Notes under the pieces: model-generated
Seen by the model: the letters and a program-made list of their open reading frames with translations, nothing else
What the model was told of the DNA's origin: nothing
The model's database searches: none
Made by a program: the position numbers and the translations under genes
Assembly (NCBI RefSeq): GCF_002113885.1
Contig: NW_018407390.1
Span: forward strand, 1,960,190 to 2,024,189
Direction of reading: 5' to 3'
Source of the DNA: Mizuhopecten yessoensis
Taxonomy: Eukaryota
Length of the DNA: 64,000 bases
Shown here: positions 1 through 11,481 of the stretch, in pieces
Position numbering within the stretch: position 1 is the first letter of the stretch
Layout of the letters: every line of letters starts with the position of its first letter

Positions 1-3000
1 GGGTATCAAGGGCGTTTTTTAGCCTTAACTCCAACAATAAATTGGAATTAGAATTTGAGAAAGTCTGACAGCTATGGAACTATCCTCCACAGCAAAGTCT
101 TTCATGAAATACCAGGAATCGAACTGACAGGCTTTTCTTGTGGATGCCGTTAAACATTTGGAGTGTCCCCCTACTTTGCCCACATGAAGAAGCAGACAAC
201 GAAATGTGCAGAGGTGTTCTTACAGGAGCTGGGATGCATCAGAAGACCAGACTTGTACTGGACATCGACTGCTTTTACAACATGGCGTCTGAGTATCTGC
301 GGTGCTCCAAATGTGGCAGAAAGGAATATACTTTTGCATTACTATTCCAGAACTCATGTTCTTACATTTATTATAAGCTATGTTTGAATAGAAATCAAAA
401 TATAGGCAACGTAGTTACAAATGATATAATCAAAGTTTTTTGTTTTGCATGGTTCATAATGCTGTAATAAAGCTTATCATAGCTGGTCCAAAATTATAAC
501 TCATCTGACAACAATTCATGTTTCATTTCCATAGAGTCAAAGAAATATTGCCCTAAAATGATGACTTCAAGTCATTTTGAACAAAAAACAAATGGTCATT
601 ACCTTCCCAAATAAAATAATTATTCTATAATAGATAATGAGTAATATCAGTTACGTATGTCAATCCCAGAATAATGGTATTTTCTTATAGATGGTTGCCT
701 GGGCCAATTACATTTTCTCCCAACTGGATAGACAGGCAGCTGCTGTTTCCTGCAATCCTGACTACAAGGTACTCTTGCGACAAGAAAGTAGTTGGTTTGT
801 TGCGTCAGAGATGGCTAGGAAACAGCAGCAGTATGGTCAGGAGACAGCTGGAGGAAGCACATGGTTACACCTACCTCAGGAATGTCCATCACTACCTGTC
901 AGCATTTAGGACCTTCAAAACTGCTGGCTCTGTAGGGCTGGTGTCTGCCAGTAGCATTGAAGAGCCTCCATCGCTTACTCTGGTACCACGACACAGGTGG
1001 CTGATTAAGGTTTACCAGCTAGATGTGCTCCAGCGTCTTGACTTTGTTAAGGGCTCCATCACATCACTATTAGGGAAGCTCCATCACATCACTATTAGGG
1101 AATGTAATAAAACTGGACTCCACCAAAAAGATCACGAAAAAGCTAGCAGGTAACGAAGAACTGAAAACATTGTTTGTAATTTATACAGTTCTTTAAAATT
1201 CAATTAAAAACTTTCACCGAAATATATTTTGCTTACATTCGAAATACAACACCTATAGACCACTATTATAGTTCAAGTTGTTAGACTTCCAAGAAAAAGT
1301 ATCCATGGAAAGCAGATGTCATTTGTCATATATGAAAATCGCCCACTAGTATCTTGAATACTACTTTCCTCGTTTTATTATCACATTTATTGTTAGAAAA
1401 ATTAATTGATCTATAACCTTTTGCTTGCACGAAAGACCGACTTATTACACATACTTTTAGTATTTTTCTCTGCTTTAGTAAGCAATCACACTATTCCTTC
1501 TTTTTGGTTTGCAGGAAGAAGTGCAAAGACTGCCATGTGGGCGACAAATGTGGTAACGAACATGGTCAAGTGATCATGTCGGTCCTCACCGCTAATGAAG
1601 GTCAGGGTCTTGCAAACATGATCACTGGACTATGCCAGCGTTACCAGGAAGCGAAGGTATCGCCACCACGATTGAAGAATGTCGACAGAGACTGTTGTGA
1701 CAGCAGATGTGTGTTGAAGTACTTCAAGAACTGGTCATTTCTTCTTGTGAGGTAAAGCAATCAATTCATTGATTATAAGACTTCTGCTAAATTGCAGGTT
1801 ATAATGCGAGAATACTACTACATGCTTGAATCGTTAGGATATGAAAAGCTTTTGTATAAATCTTCACTTGGAGAAAATATCAAAATATGTATTTGTTAGA
1901 TTCTCAAATATCACTTGAATTTGGTTTGACTGAAAACCAAAGTGTGACAAATGAGAAGTTGATTTATTCTAAAATATGTAAATCATAACTGAATCATTAT
2001 GCCTAGTTGTCAGTGTCTCAGAAAGAAAGATCTGGGGATACTTGCAGATTTTTTATGTTATGATTTTTATTATAGGTTGGACATCTGGCATTTTATGAGA
2101 AGACTGTCTGTTGGCTGCACAACTGATGCCCATCCATTGTATGGCACATTCATGGGTCGTCTCAGCCAATGCATCTTCGAATGGGAGGAGAAAGACGTTT
2201 CGTTGCTAAAGAGGGCAAAGAGGGCTGAGATGATTCAGCATCATATTCCTGATCCGTCAGATGCTGATGTTGTGCGCCACATAAAGTCTCAAGAGTTGGC
2301 TTCACGCTGCCGAAGGAGAACCAGAGGCACAAAGGAAACGACGACTCTGATTAGTGAGCTAATCCACTCCATGGAGGGAGACAAGGGACTGGACATCCGT
2401 GGAGTGTCACTATTGAATACTATAAAGATGCAGGAGATTTGGGTTAAACAGAGTCAACATGTTCCTTGCCTTCAGGATCCTGATGGTGTCCAACTTTACA
2501 CTAAAGTTGGCACTGTTAGGAAAGGTGGTGTGGAACTACCAAAGTATCGCTGTTGTTCATGTCAGCTGATAGCAAATAGAGAAGAAAGATTTAGTCTGTG
2601 GTATTAACTCGAGGACAATTAGCAAGTAAAGCAGAGGATTCAAACATTTATGTATAGGCCCTACATATTTTCATTTTTATACATAAATGATATTGTATTG
2701 TTGAGACAGTCAGTTAAACCAATGCATAATTTAATCATTGAAAATAATTTAACTTTCTGCTTACAGGATAACTGAACCTATTCCAAATTTATATTACATG
2801 TACCCTAGCCAGTGATGTCAACTTCCAGCTGTACCTTTTGGATGGTATCCATCGTTGGAACCAGGATAGAGAGAGAGAGAGAGGCAACAACAGACTGGGA
2901 ATGCCGAGGACCTCTCTCATACAACGGAGTTTTACGACATTCTGTGAACCAGTTGTCACAAGATGTGCTACAAAAAAAGATTTCTCCAGATTTTAAAGTC

Positions 3001-3806
3001 CCTGGGAAACACACAGGTACATACAGCAGTTAATATGTTTCACATTATATTTACAATGTCTGTAAAATTCTTGGTGTCTTAAAATATAAACTACATGTAC
3101 AATATTTTTATTACGCAAATGTCAATAAGATGGTAGTTAACACATGAGCATGATTGAACTATCAATATCTTAAGTGGAAAATACATACTTGTGTTATTTC
3201 AGGTGAGCTCATTGGCTTGGAGTATTTATATTCCAAGTCAACAGGTGCCACCATTAAATACAAGGAAACAGCCTTGTCTATTGAAGAGGACACGCAGCAA
3301 GAAGAGGATAGCATCGGGGAGGAGGATGGGCATTTTGAGGACCCCACTGTCCATGCATTGCAGACGGCAATTCCTAAACCGATGACACCTAGCAGACCTA
3401 TCTTGTGTATCCCCACAGATGCAGACTATAGACAACTAGCTAGAGGTTTGTGTTTAACTTGAATGTCAACAATGTCATGTGAATAGTGTCTAAACTTAGT
3501 ATCAACCAGTTGATATAAATACAAACATGCTCAAATGTGCTTCCATTTGACAAAACCTGACAAATTCAGGCTTGAAAACACAGTGGAATTAAAGCACAAA
3601 CCAAGCATTTCTACAGGGTTACAAGAAAATATGGTCTGTTTTAGTTTGTCACTGTAATTTTGGAGGTTGGGTAAATTTTAACTATCGATTACAATAATAT
3701 AAATGAATTTAGATATATATGCCATTGAACCTTTCATTTGTAATTTTTTTTTTCAAATATTCTTCCTTTATATCATTTGAATGTTTGTTTTCTATGTTTT
3801 TCGCAG

Positions 3807-5592
3807 TCCGAGCCTCTTATAGAGCCGTCTCCTTCCGCTACCAGTGGACAGTCCGAGCCTCTTATAGAGCCGTCTCCTGCCACCACCAGTGGACAGTCCG
3901 AGCCTCTTATAGAGCCGTCTCCTACCACTACCAGTGGACAGTCCGAGCCTCTTATAGAGCCGTCTCCTACCACCACCAGTGGACAGTCCGAACCTCTTAT
4001 AGAGCCGTCTCCTACCACTACCAGTGGACAGTCCGAGCCTCTTATAGAGCCGTCTCCTGCCACCACCAGTGGACAGTCCGAGCCTCTTATAGAGCCGTCT
4101 CCTACCACTACCAGTGGACAGTCCGAGCCTCTTATAGAGCCGTCTCCTACCACCACCAGTGGACAGTCCGAGCCTCTTATAGAGCCGTCTCCTACCACTA
4201 CCAGTGGACAGTCCGAGCCTCTTATAGAGCCGTCTCCTACCACCACCAGTGGACAGTCCGAGCCTCTTATAGAGCCGTCTCCTACCACTACCAGTGGACA
4301 GTCCGAACCTCTTATAGAGCCGTCTCCTACCACTACCAGTGGACAGTCCGAGCCTCTTATAGAGCCGTCTCCTGCCACCACCAGTGGACAGTCCGAGCCT
4401 CTTATAGAGCCGTCTCCTACCACCACCAGTGGACAGTCCGAGCCTCTTATAGAGCCGTCTCCTACCACCACCAGTGGACAGTCCGAGCCTCTTATAGAGC
4501 CGTCTCCTACCACTACCAGTGGACATTCCTAGCCTCTTATAGAGCCGTCTCCTGCCACCACCAGTGGACAGTCCGAGCCTCTTATAGAGCCGTCTCCTAC
4601 CACCACCAGTGGACAGTCCGAGCCTCTTATAGAGCCGTCTCCTACCACCACCAGTGGACAGTCCGAGCCTCTTATAGAGCCGTCTCCTACCACCACCAGT
4701 GGACAGTCCGAGCCTCTTATAGAGCCGTCTCCTACCACCACCAGTGGACAGTCCGAGCCTCTTATAGAGCCGTCTCCTACCACCACCAGTGGACAGTCCG
4801 AGCCTCTTATAGAGCCGTCTCCTACCACCACCAGTGGACAGTCCGAGCCTCTTATAGAGCCGTCTCCTACCACCACCAGTGGACAGTCCGAGCCTCTTAT
4901 AGAGCCGTCTCCTACCACCACCAGTGGACAGTCCGAGCCTCTTATAGAGCCGTCTCCTACCACCACCAGTGGACAGTCCGAGCCTCTTATAGAGCCGTCT
5001 CCTACCACCACCAGTGGACAGTCCGAGCCTCTTATAGAGCCGTCTCCTACCACTACCAGTGGACAGTCCGAGCCTCTTATAGAGCCGTCTCCTGCCACCA
5101 CCAGTGGACAGTCCGAGCCTCTTATAGAGCCGTCTCCTACCACTACCAGTGGACAGTCCTAGCCTCTTATAGAGCCGTCTCCTGCCACCACCAGTGGACA
5201 GTCCGAGCCTCTTATAGAGCCGTCTCCTACCACCACCAGTGGACATTCCTAGCCTCTTATAGAGCCGTCTCCTGCCACCACCAGTGGACAGTCCGAGCCT
5301 CTTATAGAGCCGTCTCCTACCACCACCAGTGGACAGTCCGAGCCTCATACAGAGCCGTCTCCTTCCGCTACCAGTGGACAGTCCGAGCCTCTTATATAGC
5401 CGTTTCCTGCCACCAGCAGTGGACAGTCCGAGCCTCTTATAGGGCCGTCTTCTACCACCACCAGTGGACAGTCTGAGCCTCATACAGAGCCGTCTCCTTC
5501 CGCTACCAGTGGACAGTCCGAGCCTCTTATAGAGCCGTCTCCTGCCACCACCAGTGGACAGTCCGAGCCTCTTATATAGCCGTTTCCTGCCA
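3807..5592 (+). repeat. 45-bp coding minisatellite, ~39.7 copies (SGQSEPLIEPSPTTT) inside a transposase exon
   Basis: Unit TCCGAGCCTCTTATAGAGCCGTCTCCTACCACCACCAGTGGACAG. The array starts right after an acceptor (ttcgcag|3807), and the exon ends ATAYVAQNEPVPDD|gtaagt at 5630. Confidence 0.98.
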
Positions 5593-6114
5593 CAGCATAT
5601 GTTGCACAGAATGAACCTGTTCCTGATGATGTAAGTATTAAATATGCTAAAGTGAATATCAAATCATATTTAAACACATATTAGATGAAATTACAAAAGT
5701 AACCCAAAACTATGGAATTACAGAGCAGTCCACATTTTCAGTATTTTCGTGTCTTTCACTTTTCAGTGCATTTAACATTGATCAGTATTTAGGTTCTGTT
5801 TTGCTGCACTAAATATATTTCAATTAATCACATTTAAAGGACTTCGGAGACTATAGGTGGCCCGTGTAACGAGCGTCTGGTTTGCCGAAATATCAATCTA
5901 TTGTCTCAAATCTGTCACGGATTCAAAAGACAACATTGTTCGAATACCTACAACAATATTTCTCCTTCAAGTTTTCCATATATATCATAATAAATTAAGG
6001 GATGTCGACAAAAATGATGCAACATCAGCTTCCTACCACAAGAAAAAGCTATGCAGTAAGCAACATTTGCCATTATAAAGGTAGCAAATCTGCTTGATTG
6101 TTTTTACCAAAGGA

Positions 6115-6637
6115 AGGGTGTCTATAAGGCCCTCTTTTGGGCCCCGGTATATTCGGATTTTCACCTCCTTATTTTGTTCAAAGATGTCCTATTGTATGAC
6201 ATGCGAAAAAACTAAGGTAAAACTTTGACCGAAAGTGGGTTTCGGGGGGTACCAAAAGGGGTATGGTAAATCACAAATATAGTTTGCTGTTTACAAAATG
6301 AGCTTAAAAACCGAAATAATACCATTTCTGTTTTTGAAAACATGTATAAATTAGACAATCATATGTAACAGAATAAAAAAAAGACAAATTTTCAATCGTC
6401 ACTTAAAGAGTGTTTATTTAAAACGAATGATTACGTCAGGGTGTGTGTGTGTCTTTTTTGGTCATTTTCAATTGAAAAGTAATTTGTTTTCTCAATAATT
6501 TCTTTTCTAATTAATATTTTGACTTTAAATTTATAATTTCACTCATTTAAGTAGACTTACATTAATTGCATATTGATTACATACTTTCCTTTTGTTTTAT
6601 ACTGAGTTATGGCTTCTGGACCCATCTCAAACTTGGC
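6115..6637 (+). repeat. Left arm of a diverged ~500-bp inverted repeat (TIR-like)
   Basis: GGGTGTCTATAAGGCC..TTTGACCGAAAGTGGG..GGGTACCAAAAGGGGTA..CTCAAACTTGGC is the imperfect reverse complement of 9698-10153. Confidence 0.85.
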
Positions 6638-8575
6638 TGAGAGAGTAACCAACGAGTCTTACAACTGAGCAAGCGCTTACACTTATTCAGCTTCGTGAAT
6701 TTCTGTCGGACTATGACAAATCCAGAACACGGTTTCCACAGCGATTCTCATCAGCTGGGTCAGGCAGTTTCAGGAGACCCACAAAAATGTGGCACTTGGT
6801 GTTACGAGCATAGAAAGTTATTCATCTTTCTCTTTAAGTTCTCTTTCTAGTCAAGTTTTAGAAAAAGAATAGTAAACAGATTTTTAGGATTTAAAAGTGA
6901 TAAGATACCGTACGACAAAATAATTTCATTTAATGCAGTACTTTGGCTGCATATGAAAGAAAAGTTAACAAAATATAAATTGAATATTTGCCAAGAACTG
7001 ACATTTCATTATAGATATTTTTCATTTCATCACATTTTATTGACAAGATGTCGTAATCAATTGGATTGAATAACAGGCAAAGCCTATATAAATTCTCTGT
7101 CAAATGGCCATTATAGATATTAACAATATCATGTGGGGTTTTTTACTTGCAGAGCAAGGTCCGAACTCAACCAGATCGAATTGGCCAGACTGCAACAGAT
7201 ATGTTGAGGCCACAGTAGTCATATCCAAGTGACAGACGCTCAAAAACGACTAAGACCTTTCATTCAAGATGGACATTAGTGAAAGAGGCCTATTCAAGGA
7301 TACAGTCACTGATTTTGTCCAACAACAGGATCCTTAGTCGTACAGACATCCAATTGCCAAGTTTAAATATAAAGACCATCCAGCAATGGTAAGTTTCAGT
7401 AATCACAACTTTGATGACCGACTGGTTGAGGTAGTCTCAGACTACACAGATATTAAGATTGCATAATACTAAATGATCTGTTCATGAGTCTATATTGACA
7501 TTTCCATTGCAAGTTCCTCTAAAAGCATCACCAGATGAAGTACGCCCATACCGGTATAAACATTTAAAACCTTATTAAATTTTTGTATGTTTTGTATTAT
7601 TTCGCTAAAACTTGTTGATAAAAATCTTTATATCTTAAAAAGCTTTGCTCTGGATAAAATATAAAGTATAAATAATTTGCAAGTTTTGTAAATGTTTCAG
7701 GTACATGTATAACAAAAAGGGGAAGGCAAGAGATCTCAGCTGCAACAGGCTTCAATGACTGGAAAAGGAGCTCCATTGCCCAAGTTAAAGCCAGAATCCT
7801 TGCAGTCAGGCGAGGCATCTCCTTTTTCCTTTTTCTTACCTCCAGATACTGCTGGTATGGCAAAACTCGAGATGCGGACGTCAAAGGCACCACCAGTTGT
7901 TTGTCGCCCTATTCTTCCCATGCCACTACCGCCTGTCACTGGGCCATTACGTTTCTCTGTAATACTGTCTCCACCAATGGCTACTCCGCCATTGACAGAT
8001 CTAGACAGAGTGGTTACAGTATCAAGTGTACAACACCAGGGACGACAAAAGAGAAAGGCAGTGACAGATGATAGTGGGATTGTGAAACGTAATTACACTA
8101 AAAGGGCCCACAGTGTGGTGACGACAGAAATCCTCTCACCTCACACATCAGCAGTACATGGTATATAGATACTGCAGCAAGACAGAGTCTGTGTCGTACG
8201 AAAACTAGAGGACACAGTTGAAAGACAAGGGGGTTACAAGAAAAAGAAAGATATGATGGAAATTGAAGGATTGAGATTATTTCAACAATGGATTAAAGGA
8301 CGTGAAAGAACAGTTATAACAATTTTAATGCTGCCTACTATATGATAACTTTGTGATATTATCACAGTTAATGAAATTGCTATATAGTAGAAGGTTCCAA
8401 GCCCTTGTAAAAGCAGAGGACACATTTTTATGACGCTATGGGAGATTGACATTTTCGTTAATGTAATTTTTATAACTCACTCAACCACTGATCTTCAAAG
8501 CTTGGTTGATAAACATTAAAAAAGATTACTTGTAATGATGACAGTTTGAAATATGCTTGTTCTGTGGAAAGATAC

Positions 8576-8650
8576 GTTTCTTTAGTTCAACTGGCTTAGA
8601 ACACTTTCCTTGTTCGGAATGAGATCCGTGTTCAAATCTCGGGGGAAGCA
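8576..8650 (+). pseudogene. Degenerate tRNA-like sequence (anticodon unreadable)
   Basis: Acceptor GTTTCTT/GGGAAGC, D arm GTTC..GAAC, T loop GTTCAAAT; the anticodon arm is irregular. Confidence 0.55.
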
Positions 8651-8814
8651 TTAATTATTGCAGTCTAGCATATTTGAAATTGTCTTTTTCATAATTTATG
8701 TGATTTTAAACATTTTCCGCCTTTTTTCCCATTTCCTTCTCTTTCTACCTTTTTTTCCCTCTCCTCCTTTCTCTTTTGTGGTTAGTGCAGCTGGAGACTT
8801 ATGATCTATGACCT

Positions 8815-8880
8815 TAGCTCAGTCGGTAGAGCATCAGACCTTTAATCTGAGTATCTATGGTTCGAGTCCCTACGTGGGCG
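8815..8880 (+). pseudogene. 5'-truncated tRNA-Lys(TTT)-like sequence
   Basis: TAGCTCAGTCGGTAGAGCATCAGACCTTTAATCTGAG..GGTTCGAGTCCC..GGGCG closely follows metazoan tRNA-Lys(UUU). Anticodon TTT at 8841-8843 with position 33 C instead of T; T-run at 8885. The 7 nt before TAGCTC (ATGACCT) do not pair with the 3' acceptor strand CGTGGGC. Confidence 0.8.
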
Positions 8881-9697
8881 ATAGTTTTGTTTTCAAATTA
8901 GTGTAAAACTGTGTACATGTACATGTTACTTGATGCTTGTTTTTTGTTTTATTAGGCGTTATACATAAATGGTACATTTATGTTTTAATCGTGTAGGGGA
9001 TAATTAGTTTCAAAATTTCGGCATCCTTTATACCACATTACCAAGAACGTATGATACTATTCTTTGTCTGTGTGAGACATCACAATGACAACAATTCCTA
9101 TAGTTTTAATTCTGACGACACAAACGGGCGTTATTATATGAGTATTGAATAAACAAATTAATATAACCTTCGAATATGCAATGTAAATAATGGTAGTCAT
9201 CTCCTAACGTGTATATTTTGTAGTTTTCTTCAATTAAAGATTGCTTCTATAGTACAGTGACAAGCACGATGTTCAACCTACTTAATCATTAGAGATAATT
9301 CTAATACTCTCTCTATCAATTGAATTTACTTTGTTAAATGCACCAATAAAATCACCTGTCGTTTTTAGAAAACATTTGTGCTCTCCAGCCATTTTTGTTC
9401 GCAAGAAGAACTAAAGGTAAATACCTGACAAAGGTTTCAAACATCAATATGACTGGTTATCTTTCACAAACATTTTTTGTCATAAATGCAATTTTAATAT
9501 TTGGTGCAAGGAGATGCATTTAGTCCTTGTATTCCAAAACACAAGAAAAAATGTTTAAGTAAAAAGGCATTGTGAGATGAGTATGAAACTTCACAAATTA
9601 AAAATCATCATATAACTAATATCCTTGCCAAGCTGCATGTTTATCCAAATACCTTTTTGTGTCTTCCACCTTTCAATTCACCAGAGGTTTTTTAAAT

Positions 9698-10153
9698 TGC
9701 CAAGTTTGAGGTGTGTCCGGAATAATCAGTACAAGACAAAAGGAAAGTGTGCAGTGAGTATGAATTTGAGTAAAGTTGTAAATTTTAACTCAAAATATAA
9801 ATAAGAAAGGAAATTATTGAGAAAACAAAACCCTTTTCATTGGAAAATTACCTAAAACCCTGACTTGATCCTCCATTTTATATAAACAATATTTTCAGTG
9901 ACGATTGAATTTCTGTCATTTTTTCATTCTTTATATTTGGCTGTTTAATTTAGACATTTCATTTTCAAAAACAGAAATGGCATTCTTTTGGTTGTTTAAG
10001 CTTATTTTGAAAACAACAAAGTATGTTTGTGACTTACCCTACCCCTTTTGGTACCCAAAACCCCACTTTCGGTCAAACTTTTGCGCATGAAATACAGAAG
10101 GGCATTTTTAAAGATATTAAGGAGGTGAAAATCCAGATTAATCTGGGTCCCAA
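9698..10153 (-). repeat. Right arm of the diverged inverted repeat, ending ...GGCCTTATAGACACTC
   Basis: Imperfect reverse complement of 6115-6637; no TSD found. Confidence 0.85.
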
Positions 10154-11481
10154 AAATGGCCTTATAGACACTCATCTTTGTAAGTACATTGTAGGGATGA
10201 TTAAACTCGTAAGAAACAATTGCTAATTGGATGATTTAATTGTAAACTAATAAAGGCGCAGATATGGGCGAGGACAAAGCTCTTACATGAACCAGGGTCG
10301 GTACATTAGGTACACAAGGTATGCCGGATTAGATAACAGAGTGACAACAGAGTGCCCAAGGAATAAGAGCCATTCATCCCCTACGTAACTTATAAAGTGA
10401 GAATATTAGACACGTGTAAGGATACATGGGATTATCTTAACCAGATAGGTGAATATTGAGCACAGTATCTGGGTATAGAATTGAGTTTTGTTCCCGACCA
10501 TTAAATCTATAAAAAAGGGTGCGATAAAAGGAAGTTTAACAAGTAGTCCTGGGCCTATTTATATCAAATATGATTAATATTAATAGGACATTAAACAAAA
10601 TAAAATCAAATCAAACCAATAATTGGAGAATATGAAAAATGAAAAAATATCAATTAACTCAATATATTCACTTTTGCCGGAGATTTCAAGCTGGTCAGGC
10701 TGACGATCGGAAATCTGAACAGAGCATGCAATTTTTCTCTAACTTTTTTCGCCCTCGGCGCTGATTGGTCCTTTAATGGTGAGGTCAACATTTGGCCCCC
10801 ACTTTGATTTCTGTTATTTTTTTCCACTATGTAGATACGTAAAAATGATCAATACCTGCATAAATGACATATATGCTTAGATATTTACTGGGGGTGGGTC
10901 GGGGTTGAGGGGTGGGGGTATGGGGGTGAACTATGGATTGCTTTGCAATGCTTTACCTTAGATAGCCTTTAGCTTATAGTTCTGTGTTATATAGGAGTCG
11001 GTGTATTAGTTAGTCTTTGGCCTACAGATTTAGTTATTCTTTTATTTGGCATATTGCCTATTTATTAAACAAAATATGGAGAAAAATTACATTATCTTAT
11101 ATCGTTAACTTTAAACAAATAAAGCAAATCTGACTCCCCATATTAAAAGTTATTTCAGCACATTTTATTTTGTGACATTGAACGAAGGTCAAGGTCATCA
11201 ACGTTTACAACACTTAAACTCATTTACATGAAGAACCTACTGGCTACCAGTAGTTTTTCTTTCTTTTTGAATCAAAAGTGTTATATGAAAAATGTACCGG
11301 TTGTCAATTCTTTTGAAATTCCTGGTGTTGAAAGATATAATTGGTAGCCTACTTTCAAGCAAGTATGAAGTATAGACTGGTTTTAGAACTATATAAATTA
11401 ACGTGTCGAAAATGTAAATTGAAAGTGATTGCAAACCTTTGTTGTTTGTTTTGACAATAATAACCATTACTATTTTCCATA

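Follow-up and report, generated by a model that had tools for sequence, protein, structure and literature searches.

Does the truncated tRNA-Lys gene that starts at position 8815 of a 64,000-nt stretch of the genome of the scallop Mizuhopecten yessoensis (contig NW_018407390.1, positions 1,960,190 to 2,024,189 of the forward strand; hereafter the window) owe its missing end to a DNA transposon of the Dada superfamily, and was that gene the target of a site-specific insertion? The window adjoins a tRNA-Lys/Gln/Gly cluster, and its positions 1–8814 (plus strand) hold the 3′ nine kb of a decayed, intron-bearing element that runs on upstream of the window into masked sequence. An initial annotation had placed the right junction of a Dada element, inserted in a tRNA-Lys gene, at 8814/8815, a proposal that was borne out by three genomic copies with the same junction and different flanks. 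With a probability of roughly 0.87, we consider the locus to be a dead, non-autonomous copy of Dada, a superfamily of cut-and-paste DNA transposons, inserted in a tRNA-Lys(UUU) gene at nucleotides 8–13 (TAGCTC), at the boundary of the acceptor and D arms and in part of the A box.

A chain of exon-like open reading frames (ORFs) on the plus strand spans positions 108–8165 of the window. Its first two exons (108–326 and 692–1151) match the first and second halves of domain DUF6729 (Pfam PF20499, E values 2e-19 and 5e-25); the first contains an N-terminal zinc finger (C...C and CSKC, with the CxxC at 303–323) and the second the first catalytic D, in the motif LDSTKK (1113–1130). A third exon (1514–1752), recognized from the ORFs and by motif match, carries WATNV/GNEHGQV and the second catalytic D (VDRDCC, 1681–1698), and a fourth (2077–2553) carries the DxxH motif (LDIWH, 2077–2091) and the CRRRTRG block, being cut at YRC by a deletion. 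The window copy therefore retains D1, D2 and the DxxH after the second D, and the three motifs reported in the initial annotation were found in place, as was a C-terminal zinc-finger remnant (HTSAVHGI*, 8142–8165). The window protein was searched exon by exon. In a comparison by eye with the conserved block alignment of Dada (Dataset S1 of Kojima and Jurka, 2013; PMC3706591), the window exons plus the copy on contig C76089 reproduce the published blocks in the same order: MDSTKK, AAWATNVGNEHGQVLMSVLT, VDRDCC, RLDIWH, HCRRRTRG, CIQDP.GV.LYT and YRCARGSTSLES. The ARGSTSLES block, to which we tentatively assign the catalytic E, has been lost from the window copy by deletion and is intact in that of C76089, where it reads YRCARGSTSLESFHLH. 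Likewise, the C-terminal CCHC finger (KCSKCG...H...C) is intact in the copies on C76220 and C4985 and in Argopecten, and broken in the window.

A sister family contains an intact 577-amino-acid ORF (L050:7384-9117) that adjoins a U6 fragment and is 54–57 % identical to the exon of the window encoding the Asp-Asp-Glu (DDE) domain. This ORF has 682 relatives at E ≤ 1e-10, all with DUF6729 and most of them named "uncharacterized", three of which could be labelled from their own flanks. The goldfish protein P0053 lies on QPKE01005872.1, the contig of Dada-tY_CaAu in Fig. S2 of PMC8869645; the sea anemone protein P0022 lies between two U6 pieces, which are on the opposite strand; and P0029, from Culter alburnus, is inserted at position 8 of a tRNA-Arg gene in one copy and of a tRNA-Lys(CUU) gene in the other. 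The agreement between the block match and these flank-labelled relatives identifies the predicted protein of the window as a Dada transposase, as had been proposed, and indicates that proteins whose sole database annotation is "DUF6729 domain-containing" represent Dada transposases.

The tRNA-Lys sequence begins exactly at the proposed boundary. Rfam recognizes 8815–8872 as a tRNA covering positions 8–63 of the model (37.2 bits for a cut-off of 29; E 3e-4 for the window as a whole), position 8880 is the last base of the 3′ acceptor strand CGTGGGCG, and a T-run terminator extends the gene piece to 8894 (plus strand); ARAGORN misses this piece and calls instead a tRNA-like unit at 8576–8650. Alignment with four intact tRNA-Lys(UUU) genes, situated 27–39 kb upstream on the same contig, showed GCCCGCG followed by TAGCTC in the intact genes and ATGACCT followed by TAGCTC in the window, so that exactly seven 5′ acceptor bases are gone from the latter. 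The abrupt start and the loss of the 5′ acceptor strand had both been correctly noticed, and the expected strand, given as GCCCACG, was close to the actual GCCCGCG. The hexamer TAGCTC at 8815–8820 (plus strand), corresponding to tRNA nucleotides 8–13, would be the right-hand copy of the expected target duplication.

A whole-genome search with positions 8300–8900 located the 3′ end of the element in three copies, those of the window, C76220 and C4985. In all three, ...CTATGRCCT is followed by TAGCTCAGTCGG at nucleotide 8 of a tRNA-Lys gene, so the check suggested by the initial annotation, that copies end at the same base with tRNA-Lys downstream, gave 3/3. Similarity between copies stops 11–14 bases past the tRNA (8891–8894), and the flanks differ directly after the terminator. 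The hosts are a tRNA-Lys(UUU) piece with a flank found nowhere else (window), a tRNA-Lys(UUU) gene that, together with 739 bp of flank, shares 97 % identity with one of the intact Lys-UUU units in the cluster (C76220), and, in C4985, a gene of Lys-CUU type. Because there are three different host genes, the tRNA-Lys pieces represent target genes and not cargo, and the same junction in three copies with different flanks supports a site-specific insertion. Chance adjacency of a transposon fragment to a 5′-truncated tRNA pseudogene, or to the head of a tRNA-derived short interspersed nuclear element (SINE), would gain some plausibility from the abundance of tRNA-derived repeats in the scallop genome; one of them, at L033:1500-1560 (G000:C3643), has a tRNA-like head starting GGCCCGCGTAGCTC and then diverging, and is probably such a SINE and not a Dada junction. 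Nevertheless, the identical breakpoint in three copies coincides with the published Dada target site, and the tRNA piece, like a gene, still has a 3′ acceptor strand and a terminator, so that we give coincidence almost no credence.

The initial annotation had also considered that the tRNA-like pieces might be cargo of a larger element ending near 10153. In its favour, inverted repeats pair 6110–6605 with 9726–10179, and a complete tRNA-like unit does lie inside the element at 8576–8650. These repeats belong to a ca. 500-bp sequence unrelated to Dada that is present as two inverted copies, one inside the element (5829–6636) and the other 3′ of the tRNA (9726–10179). However, copies of the element cease to be alike at 8891–8894, the 6110–6605 arm is part of a nested insert that is absent from the C76220 copy, and the tRNA-Lys pieces belong to two types of gene with matching intact counterparts in the vicinity. 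We thus reject an element that ends at 10153, the signal there being the inverted second copy of the nested repeat, and consider the cargo hypothesis very improbable.

Several observations weigh against the interpretation of the locus as a site-specific Dada insertion. There are only three right junctions, and the protein was compared with Dataset S1 by eye. The remaining ones concern the left side. Upstream of the window, 91 % of the adjoining 10 kb is N, so the left end of the window copy lies within masked sequence and its duplication is unseen. The sole left junction found is that of C4985, 12.8 kb upstream of its right junction, where a native Lys-CUU-type flank is followed by GCCCGGC, TACCTT (nucleotides 1–13) and then non-tRNA sequence. 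The 5′ acceptor strand of this piece is complementary to the 3′ strand, of GTTGGGC type, of the right junction, indicating that the two are parts of a single gene with an overlap at nucleotides 8–13, which implies a putative degenerate 6-bp duplication; TACCTT and TAGCTC match at 4/6 bases, in a copy without a true 5′ end. Indeed, the 131 bp just inside this left junction have an internal position in the copies on C4808 and C2776, where the next 20 bases upstream are common to both, so the true 5′ end of the C4985 copy was lost right at the boundary; we infer that an aborted excision resecting into the element would give this pattern. The 5′ terminus of the family is seen in no copy: that of C76220 meets the contig end, those of C2776 (beyond L054:9868) and upstream on C4063 are masked, and those of C4985 and C76089 are 5′-deleted, lack the N-terminal exons and are full of nested repeats. 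A genome-wide pattern search for GCCCGCGTAGCTC, the Lys-UUU 5′ piece, followed by non-tRNA sequence gave one SINE-like match only.

Dada elements are characterized by target site duplications of 6–7 bp, an absence of terminal inverted repeats and short subterminal repeats resembling the target. No inverted match was found between the 3′ end of the element and the C4985 left junction, the true 5′ terminus of the family lying outside the visible sequence; in the C4985 copy, the motif GAGCTxATGGCCT occurs close to each of the two ends. The 5′ parts of the C4985 and C76089 copies have been invaded by repeats, among them a very abundant one with tandem subunits of ca. 145 bp (1462–1806 of C76089, reverse strand), which occurs in many other contigs. 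Separately, a tRNA-Lys(UUU) gene at L022 (G000:C5514, about 218000, minus strand) shows a deletion from just after TAGCT to the anticodon loop; the start of this deletion falls within the hexamer targeted by Dada, and an excision scar is conceivable.

The shared junction would be uninformative on specificity if a single ancient insertion in a tRNA-Lys unit had spread by duplication and gene conversion of array units. The low number of junctions, all in tRNA clusters, and the 97 % identity of the C76220 flank to a unit of the same cluster would fit this scenario, as would the 100 % identity of window 1078–1734 with C76220, in a neighbourhood of 88–95 %, which hints at conversion or assembly collapse. 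Conversely, the three downstream flanks differ directly after the terminator, one of the hosts is a different isoacceptor type with 5′ and 3′ acceptor strands of its own that match each other, and fish relatives choose the same site, copies with 99.99 % identity being present in two separate arrays of tRNA genes. On balance we regard a single ancient insertion as unlikely, and repeated insertion into tRNA-Lys genes as the preferred interpretation. The stretch in question, 1078–1734, is identical to both C76220:7026-7682 and C65353:1-565, with copies elsewhere at 88–95 %, and its cause would be either gene conversion between copies or collapse of the assembly.

Along window 1–8814, the copies on C76220, C4985 and C76089 are 88–97 % identical. 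The element extends for at least 2.1 kb upstream of position 1, since two unmasked islands lying within that distance share 97 % identity with the 5′ part of the C76220 copy. Downstream of the exons described above, tblastn to other Dada families and Argopecten delimits two more coding exons on the plus strand, at about 2772–3018 and 3202–3447, and the C-terminal exons, at about 6649–6810, 7141–7389 and 7713–8165 (plus strand), ending in the broken CCHC finger. Between these two groups there is an in-frame tandem array of 45 bp x 39.8 (SEPLIEPSPTTTSGQ; 3804–5593, plus strand; 95 % matches in Tandem Repeats Finder, TRF) with a few stop codons in the ORF list. This array, within a Dada exon, has 52 % G+C and a strong C skew, and its length probably differs between copies. 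It is followed by the nested insertion at 5829–6636, evidenced by its inverted repeats and its absence from the C76220 copy. The 3′ part of the element contains a ribozyme-like unit (ca. 8326–8428) and the complete tRNA-Thr(UGU)-like unit (8576–8650), both on the plus strand, and ends, as deduced from comparison of copies, with a CT-rich subterminal stretch and the 3′ terminus ...CTATGACCT (8737–8814, plus strand); the C76220 and C4985 copies have about 470 bp extra near the 3′ end, with a second CT-rich unit.

Lesions are spread along the whole window copy. A 25-bp tandem duplication at 1053–1102 (TRF) breaks the frame before the first D, a one-base frameshift occurs near 1552, and a deletion of about 250–290 bp at 2553, where other copies have extra sequence, takes out the ARGSTSLES block. 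In addition, there are stop codons within the 45-bp array, and the CCHC finger is broken by a small deletion plus a frameshift. Judging from these lesions, the window copy is a dead, non-autonomous Dada element. The host tRNA gene piece is also decaying, as indicated by a U33-to-C change in its anticodon loop. In the mechanism that we envisage, the transposase would recognize conserved tRNA sequence around position 8 and make a staggered 6-bp cut, the split tRNA gene being presumably dispensable because it is multicopy. After insertion, the window copy would have lost its function via the frameshifts, the ARGSTSLES deletion, the broken finger and the nested repeat, while its host tRNA piece was mutating too.

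The stretch from the stop codon (8165) to the 3′ end (8814) contains two RNA-like units, a candidate twister ribozyme followed by the tRNA-Thr-like unit. The former was identified by Rfam as of twister-P1 type, with only its 3′ half aligned (28.4 bits) because of a 54-nt insertion in stem P3, and with a mismatch in P1 in the window copy. Better preserved examples occur in other elements: compared with the cut-off of 67.2 bits for twister-P1 (RF03160), the C3638 family scores 67.3, the U6-type contig C74400 62.1, the C76220 copy 52.9 and Argopecten irradians 48.6, with the C76220 match covering the full model at a genome-wide E of 2e-8. A 29-base core, AAGGTYCCAAGCCC...AAAGCAGAGG, is nearly invariant across all Dada-linked twisters; it is present in three copies of the tRNA-Lys family, in the U6-type family (C74400, and a deleted remnant in L050), in the C3638 family and in A. 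irradians, as well as in the Dada-U6 element of Actinostola (four tandem units) and at a sea urchin locus (half unit). Stem P3 varies between families with compensating changes (UAGC/GCUA vs. UACUAUAU/AUAUAGUA). The predicted ribozyme is always downstream of the transposase and on the same strand, and inside the element wherever the element end is known, and a tRNA-like unit often comes after it; besides that of the window, Dada-linked sites are L023:688-881, L051:7280-7341, L060:17309-17394 and L066:15071-15592. In the last of these, from Actinostola sp., the four units, with a spacing of ca. 160 bp, lie between the transposase gene of Dada-U6 and its junction with U6. The tRNA-Thr(UGU)-like unit of the window (Rfam, 33.3 bits, model 1–71; also called by ARAGORN) is conserved in other copies, and C74400 has a related unit after its twister.

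The scallop genome has at least 19 twister matches and eight DUF6729 loci, and the ribozyme is present in five Dada copies with a visible 3′ part: those of the window, C76220, C4985, C3638 and a short derivative on C76711. The latter (C76711:542813-543559) consists of short DUF6729 fragments with a twister 160 bp later (60.7 bits), and is probably an internally deleted Dada derivative. Thirteen twister matches have no known context, with U6 genes adjoining none of them, and none of the listed matches is on the contig of the C1955 DUF6729 locus, whose 3′ side itself was uninspected. The twister core pattern had no match at the goldfish, Fundulus, Culter, Oryzias, Triplophysa and Priapulus loci; Rfam was applied, at its gathering threshold only, to four of these loci, including that of Mercenaria.

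These observations lead us to the tentative proposal, to which we concede slightly less than even odds, that the twister-P1 and the tRNA-like unit might form a fixed 3′ RNA-processing module of invertebrate Dada elements, releasing the transposase transcript from the array of small-RNA genes that hosts the element or otherwise setting its 3′ end, and that, separately, the scallop family might represent an independent move onto tRNA-Lys among Dada elements that insert at position 8. The role of the predicted ribozyme in setting or freeing the 3′ end of the transcript is hypothetical. The roles of twister were described as largely speculative in a 2016 review, a 2019 review stated that little is known on the biology of self-cleaving ribozymes, and a 2021 paper still regarded twister as lacking a confirmed function. 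In the literature searched we found no link of twister with Dada or with any DNA transposon, with an earlier remark in the original twister paper being possible. If twister were indeed built into Dada elements from cnidarians to molluscs, this would be, to our knowledge, the first DNA-transposon context for a small self-cleaving ribozyme, and would provide both a testable role for twister in animals and a genetic home for part of the animal twisters. The ribozyme module possibly matters more than the target site itself.

To place the family among other Dada elements, a quick maximum likelihood tree was built with IQ-TREE (113 rows and 526 columns, short search, midpoint root), with no verified fish Dada-tK protein included. 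The DDE exon of C76089 grouped with A. irradians P0023 and with the Mercenaria, Oryzias and Culter position-8 elements in a clade with a value of 100 in the Shimodaira-Hasegawa-like approximate likelihood ratio test (SH-aLRT), whereas goldfish Dada-tY and a Fundulus protein formed a separate clade (SH-aLRT 100) and invertebrate U6-type proteins a third group. The scallop family is thus probably a lineage separate from the fish tY clade; descent from a tK/tY/tN/tL clade is not supported in this midpoint-rooted tree without verified fish tK. No tRNA is recognizable within 10 kb of the Fundulus heteroclitus protein, which was therefore not labelled as tK; Dada-tK is the only type listed for this species. 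The A. irradians orthologue is 83 % identical in the DDE exon, and its locus is uninformative on the junction because it is cut off after the twister by another partial copy, with no tRNA nearby.

The suggestion in the initial annotation that tRNA-Lys might be an unreported target did not stand, since Dada-tK of fish, inserted at TAGCTC in tRNA-Lys, was published in 2022 (Kojima, 2022; PMC8869645), together with Dada-tY, the canonical duplication of both being TAGCTC at tRNA nucleotides 8–13. With TAGCTC used by fish Dada-tK/tY and also by Dada-tI and Dada-tY of Perkinsus, the target is not new. Beyond fish and Perkinsus, only Dada-U6 has been described from other animal phyla (PMC8869645, PMC3706591), and we found no tRNA-targeting Dada from a mollusc in the literature searched; what is new may therefore be the host phylum and the lineage. 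This extends Dada insertion at tRNA positions 8–13 from fish and a protist to a mollusc, and should be useful for understanding or reusing the target recognition of these transposons.

The closest known systems with regard to the target are Dada-tK and Dada-tY of ray-finned fish, which insert, as the scallop family does, at TAGCTC of nucleotides 8–13, tK in tRNA-Lys and tY in tRNA-Tyr/Phe. In these elements, also as in the scallop, the 5′ piece of the tRNA lies at the 5′ side of the element and the 3′ piece at the 3′ side, and the hexamer is sometimes altered. They differ in their hosts, the scallop being a bivalve, and in that the fish loci scanned are without twister. Five lineages (tY, tK, tN, tR and tS) share the insertion position, with the duplicated hexamer sometimes replaced (PMC8869645). 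Fish elements of the Dada-tR/tN type target TGGCGC, also at nucleotides 8–13 and hence at the same cloverleaf position as the scallop family; the family from C. alburnus keeps TGGCGC at its right side even inside tRNA-Lys, whereas the scallop copies keep TAGCTC. The C. alburnus element is 11.1 kb long and is represented by two 99.99 % identical copies (L068:8431-19553 and L069:8431-19552), one within an array of tRNA-Lys(CUU)/Asn genes and the other within an array of tRNA-Arg/Glu/Tyr genes, which is indicative of recent activity and of relaxed selectivity for the tRNA species. Dada-tIA, tIB and tY of Perkinsus marinus have a putative duplication TAGCTC in the A box, as in the scallop, and differ in their protist host, in being intronless and in using other tRNA species. 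From the sequences compared, these parallels suggest a conserved insertion position with switching of tRNA species between lineages.

Dada-U6, described from fish, Daphnia, Capitella and oyster (PMC3706591), belongs to the same superfamily and is also present in this scallop, beside U6 pieces in C76711 and C74400, as well as in a sea anemone. It shares the twister and the tRNA-like 3′ module with the scallop tRNA-Lys family, and differs in its target, the gene for U6 small nuclear RNA, in the orientation of its transposase, opposite to U6, and in being 54–57 % identical in the DDE exon. Outside DNA transposons, retroelements likewise carry ribozymes as a fixed part of the element, such as those resembling the ribozyme of hepatitis delta virus (R2, L1Tc), hammerheads (retrozymes, Penelope-like elements) and twister variants (Perere-3). 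In those retroelements the ribozyme is placed at the 5′ end or in the long terminal repeat, whereas in the scallop Dada, a DNA transposon, the predicted ribozyme follows the transposase ORF.

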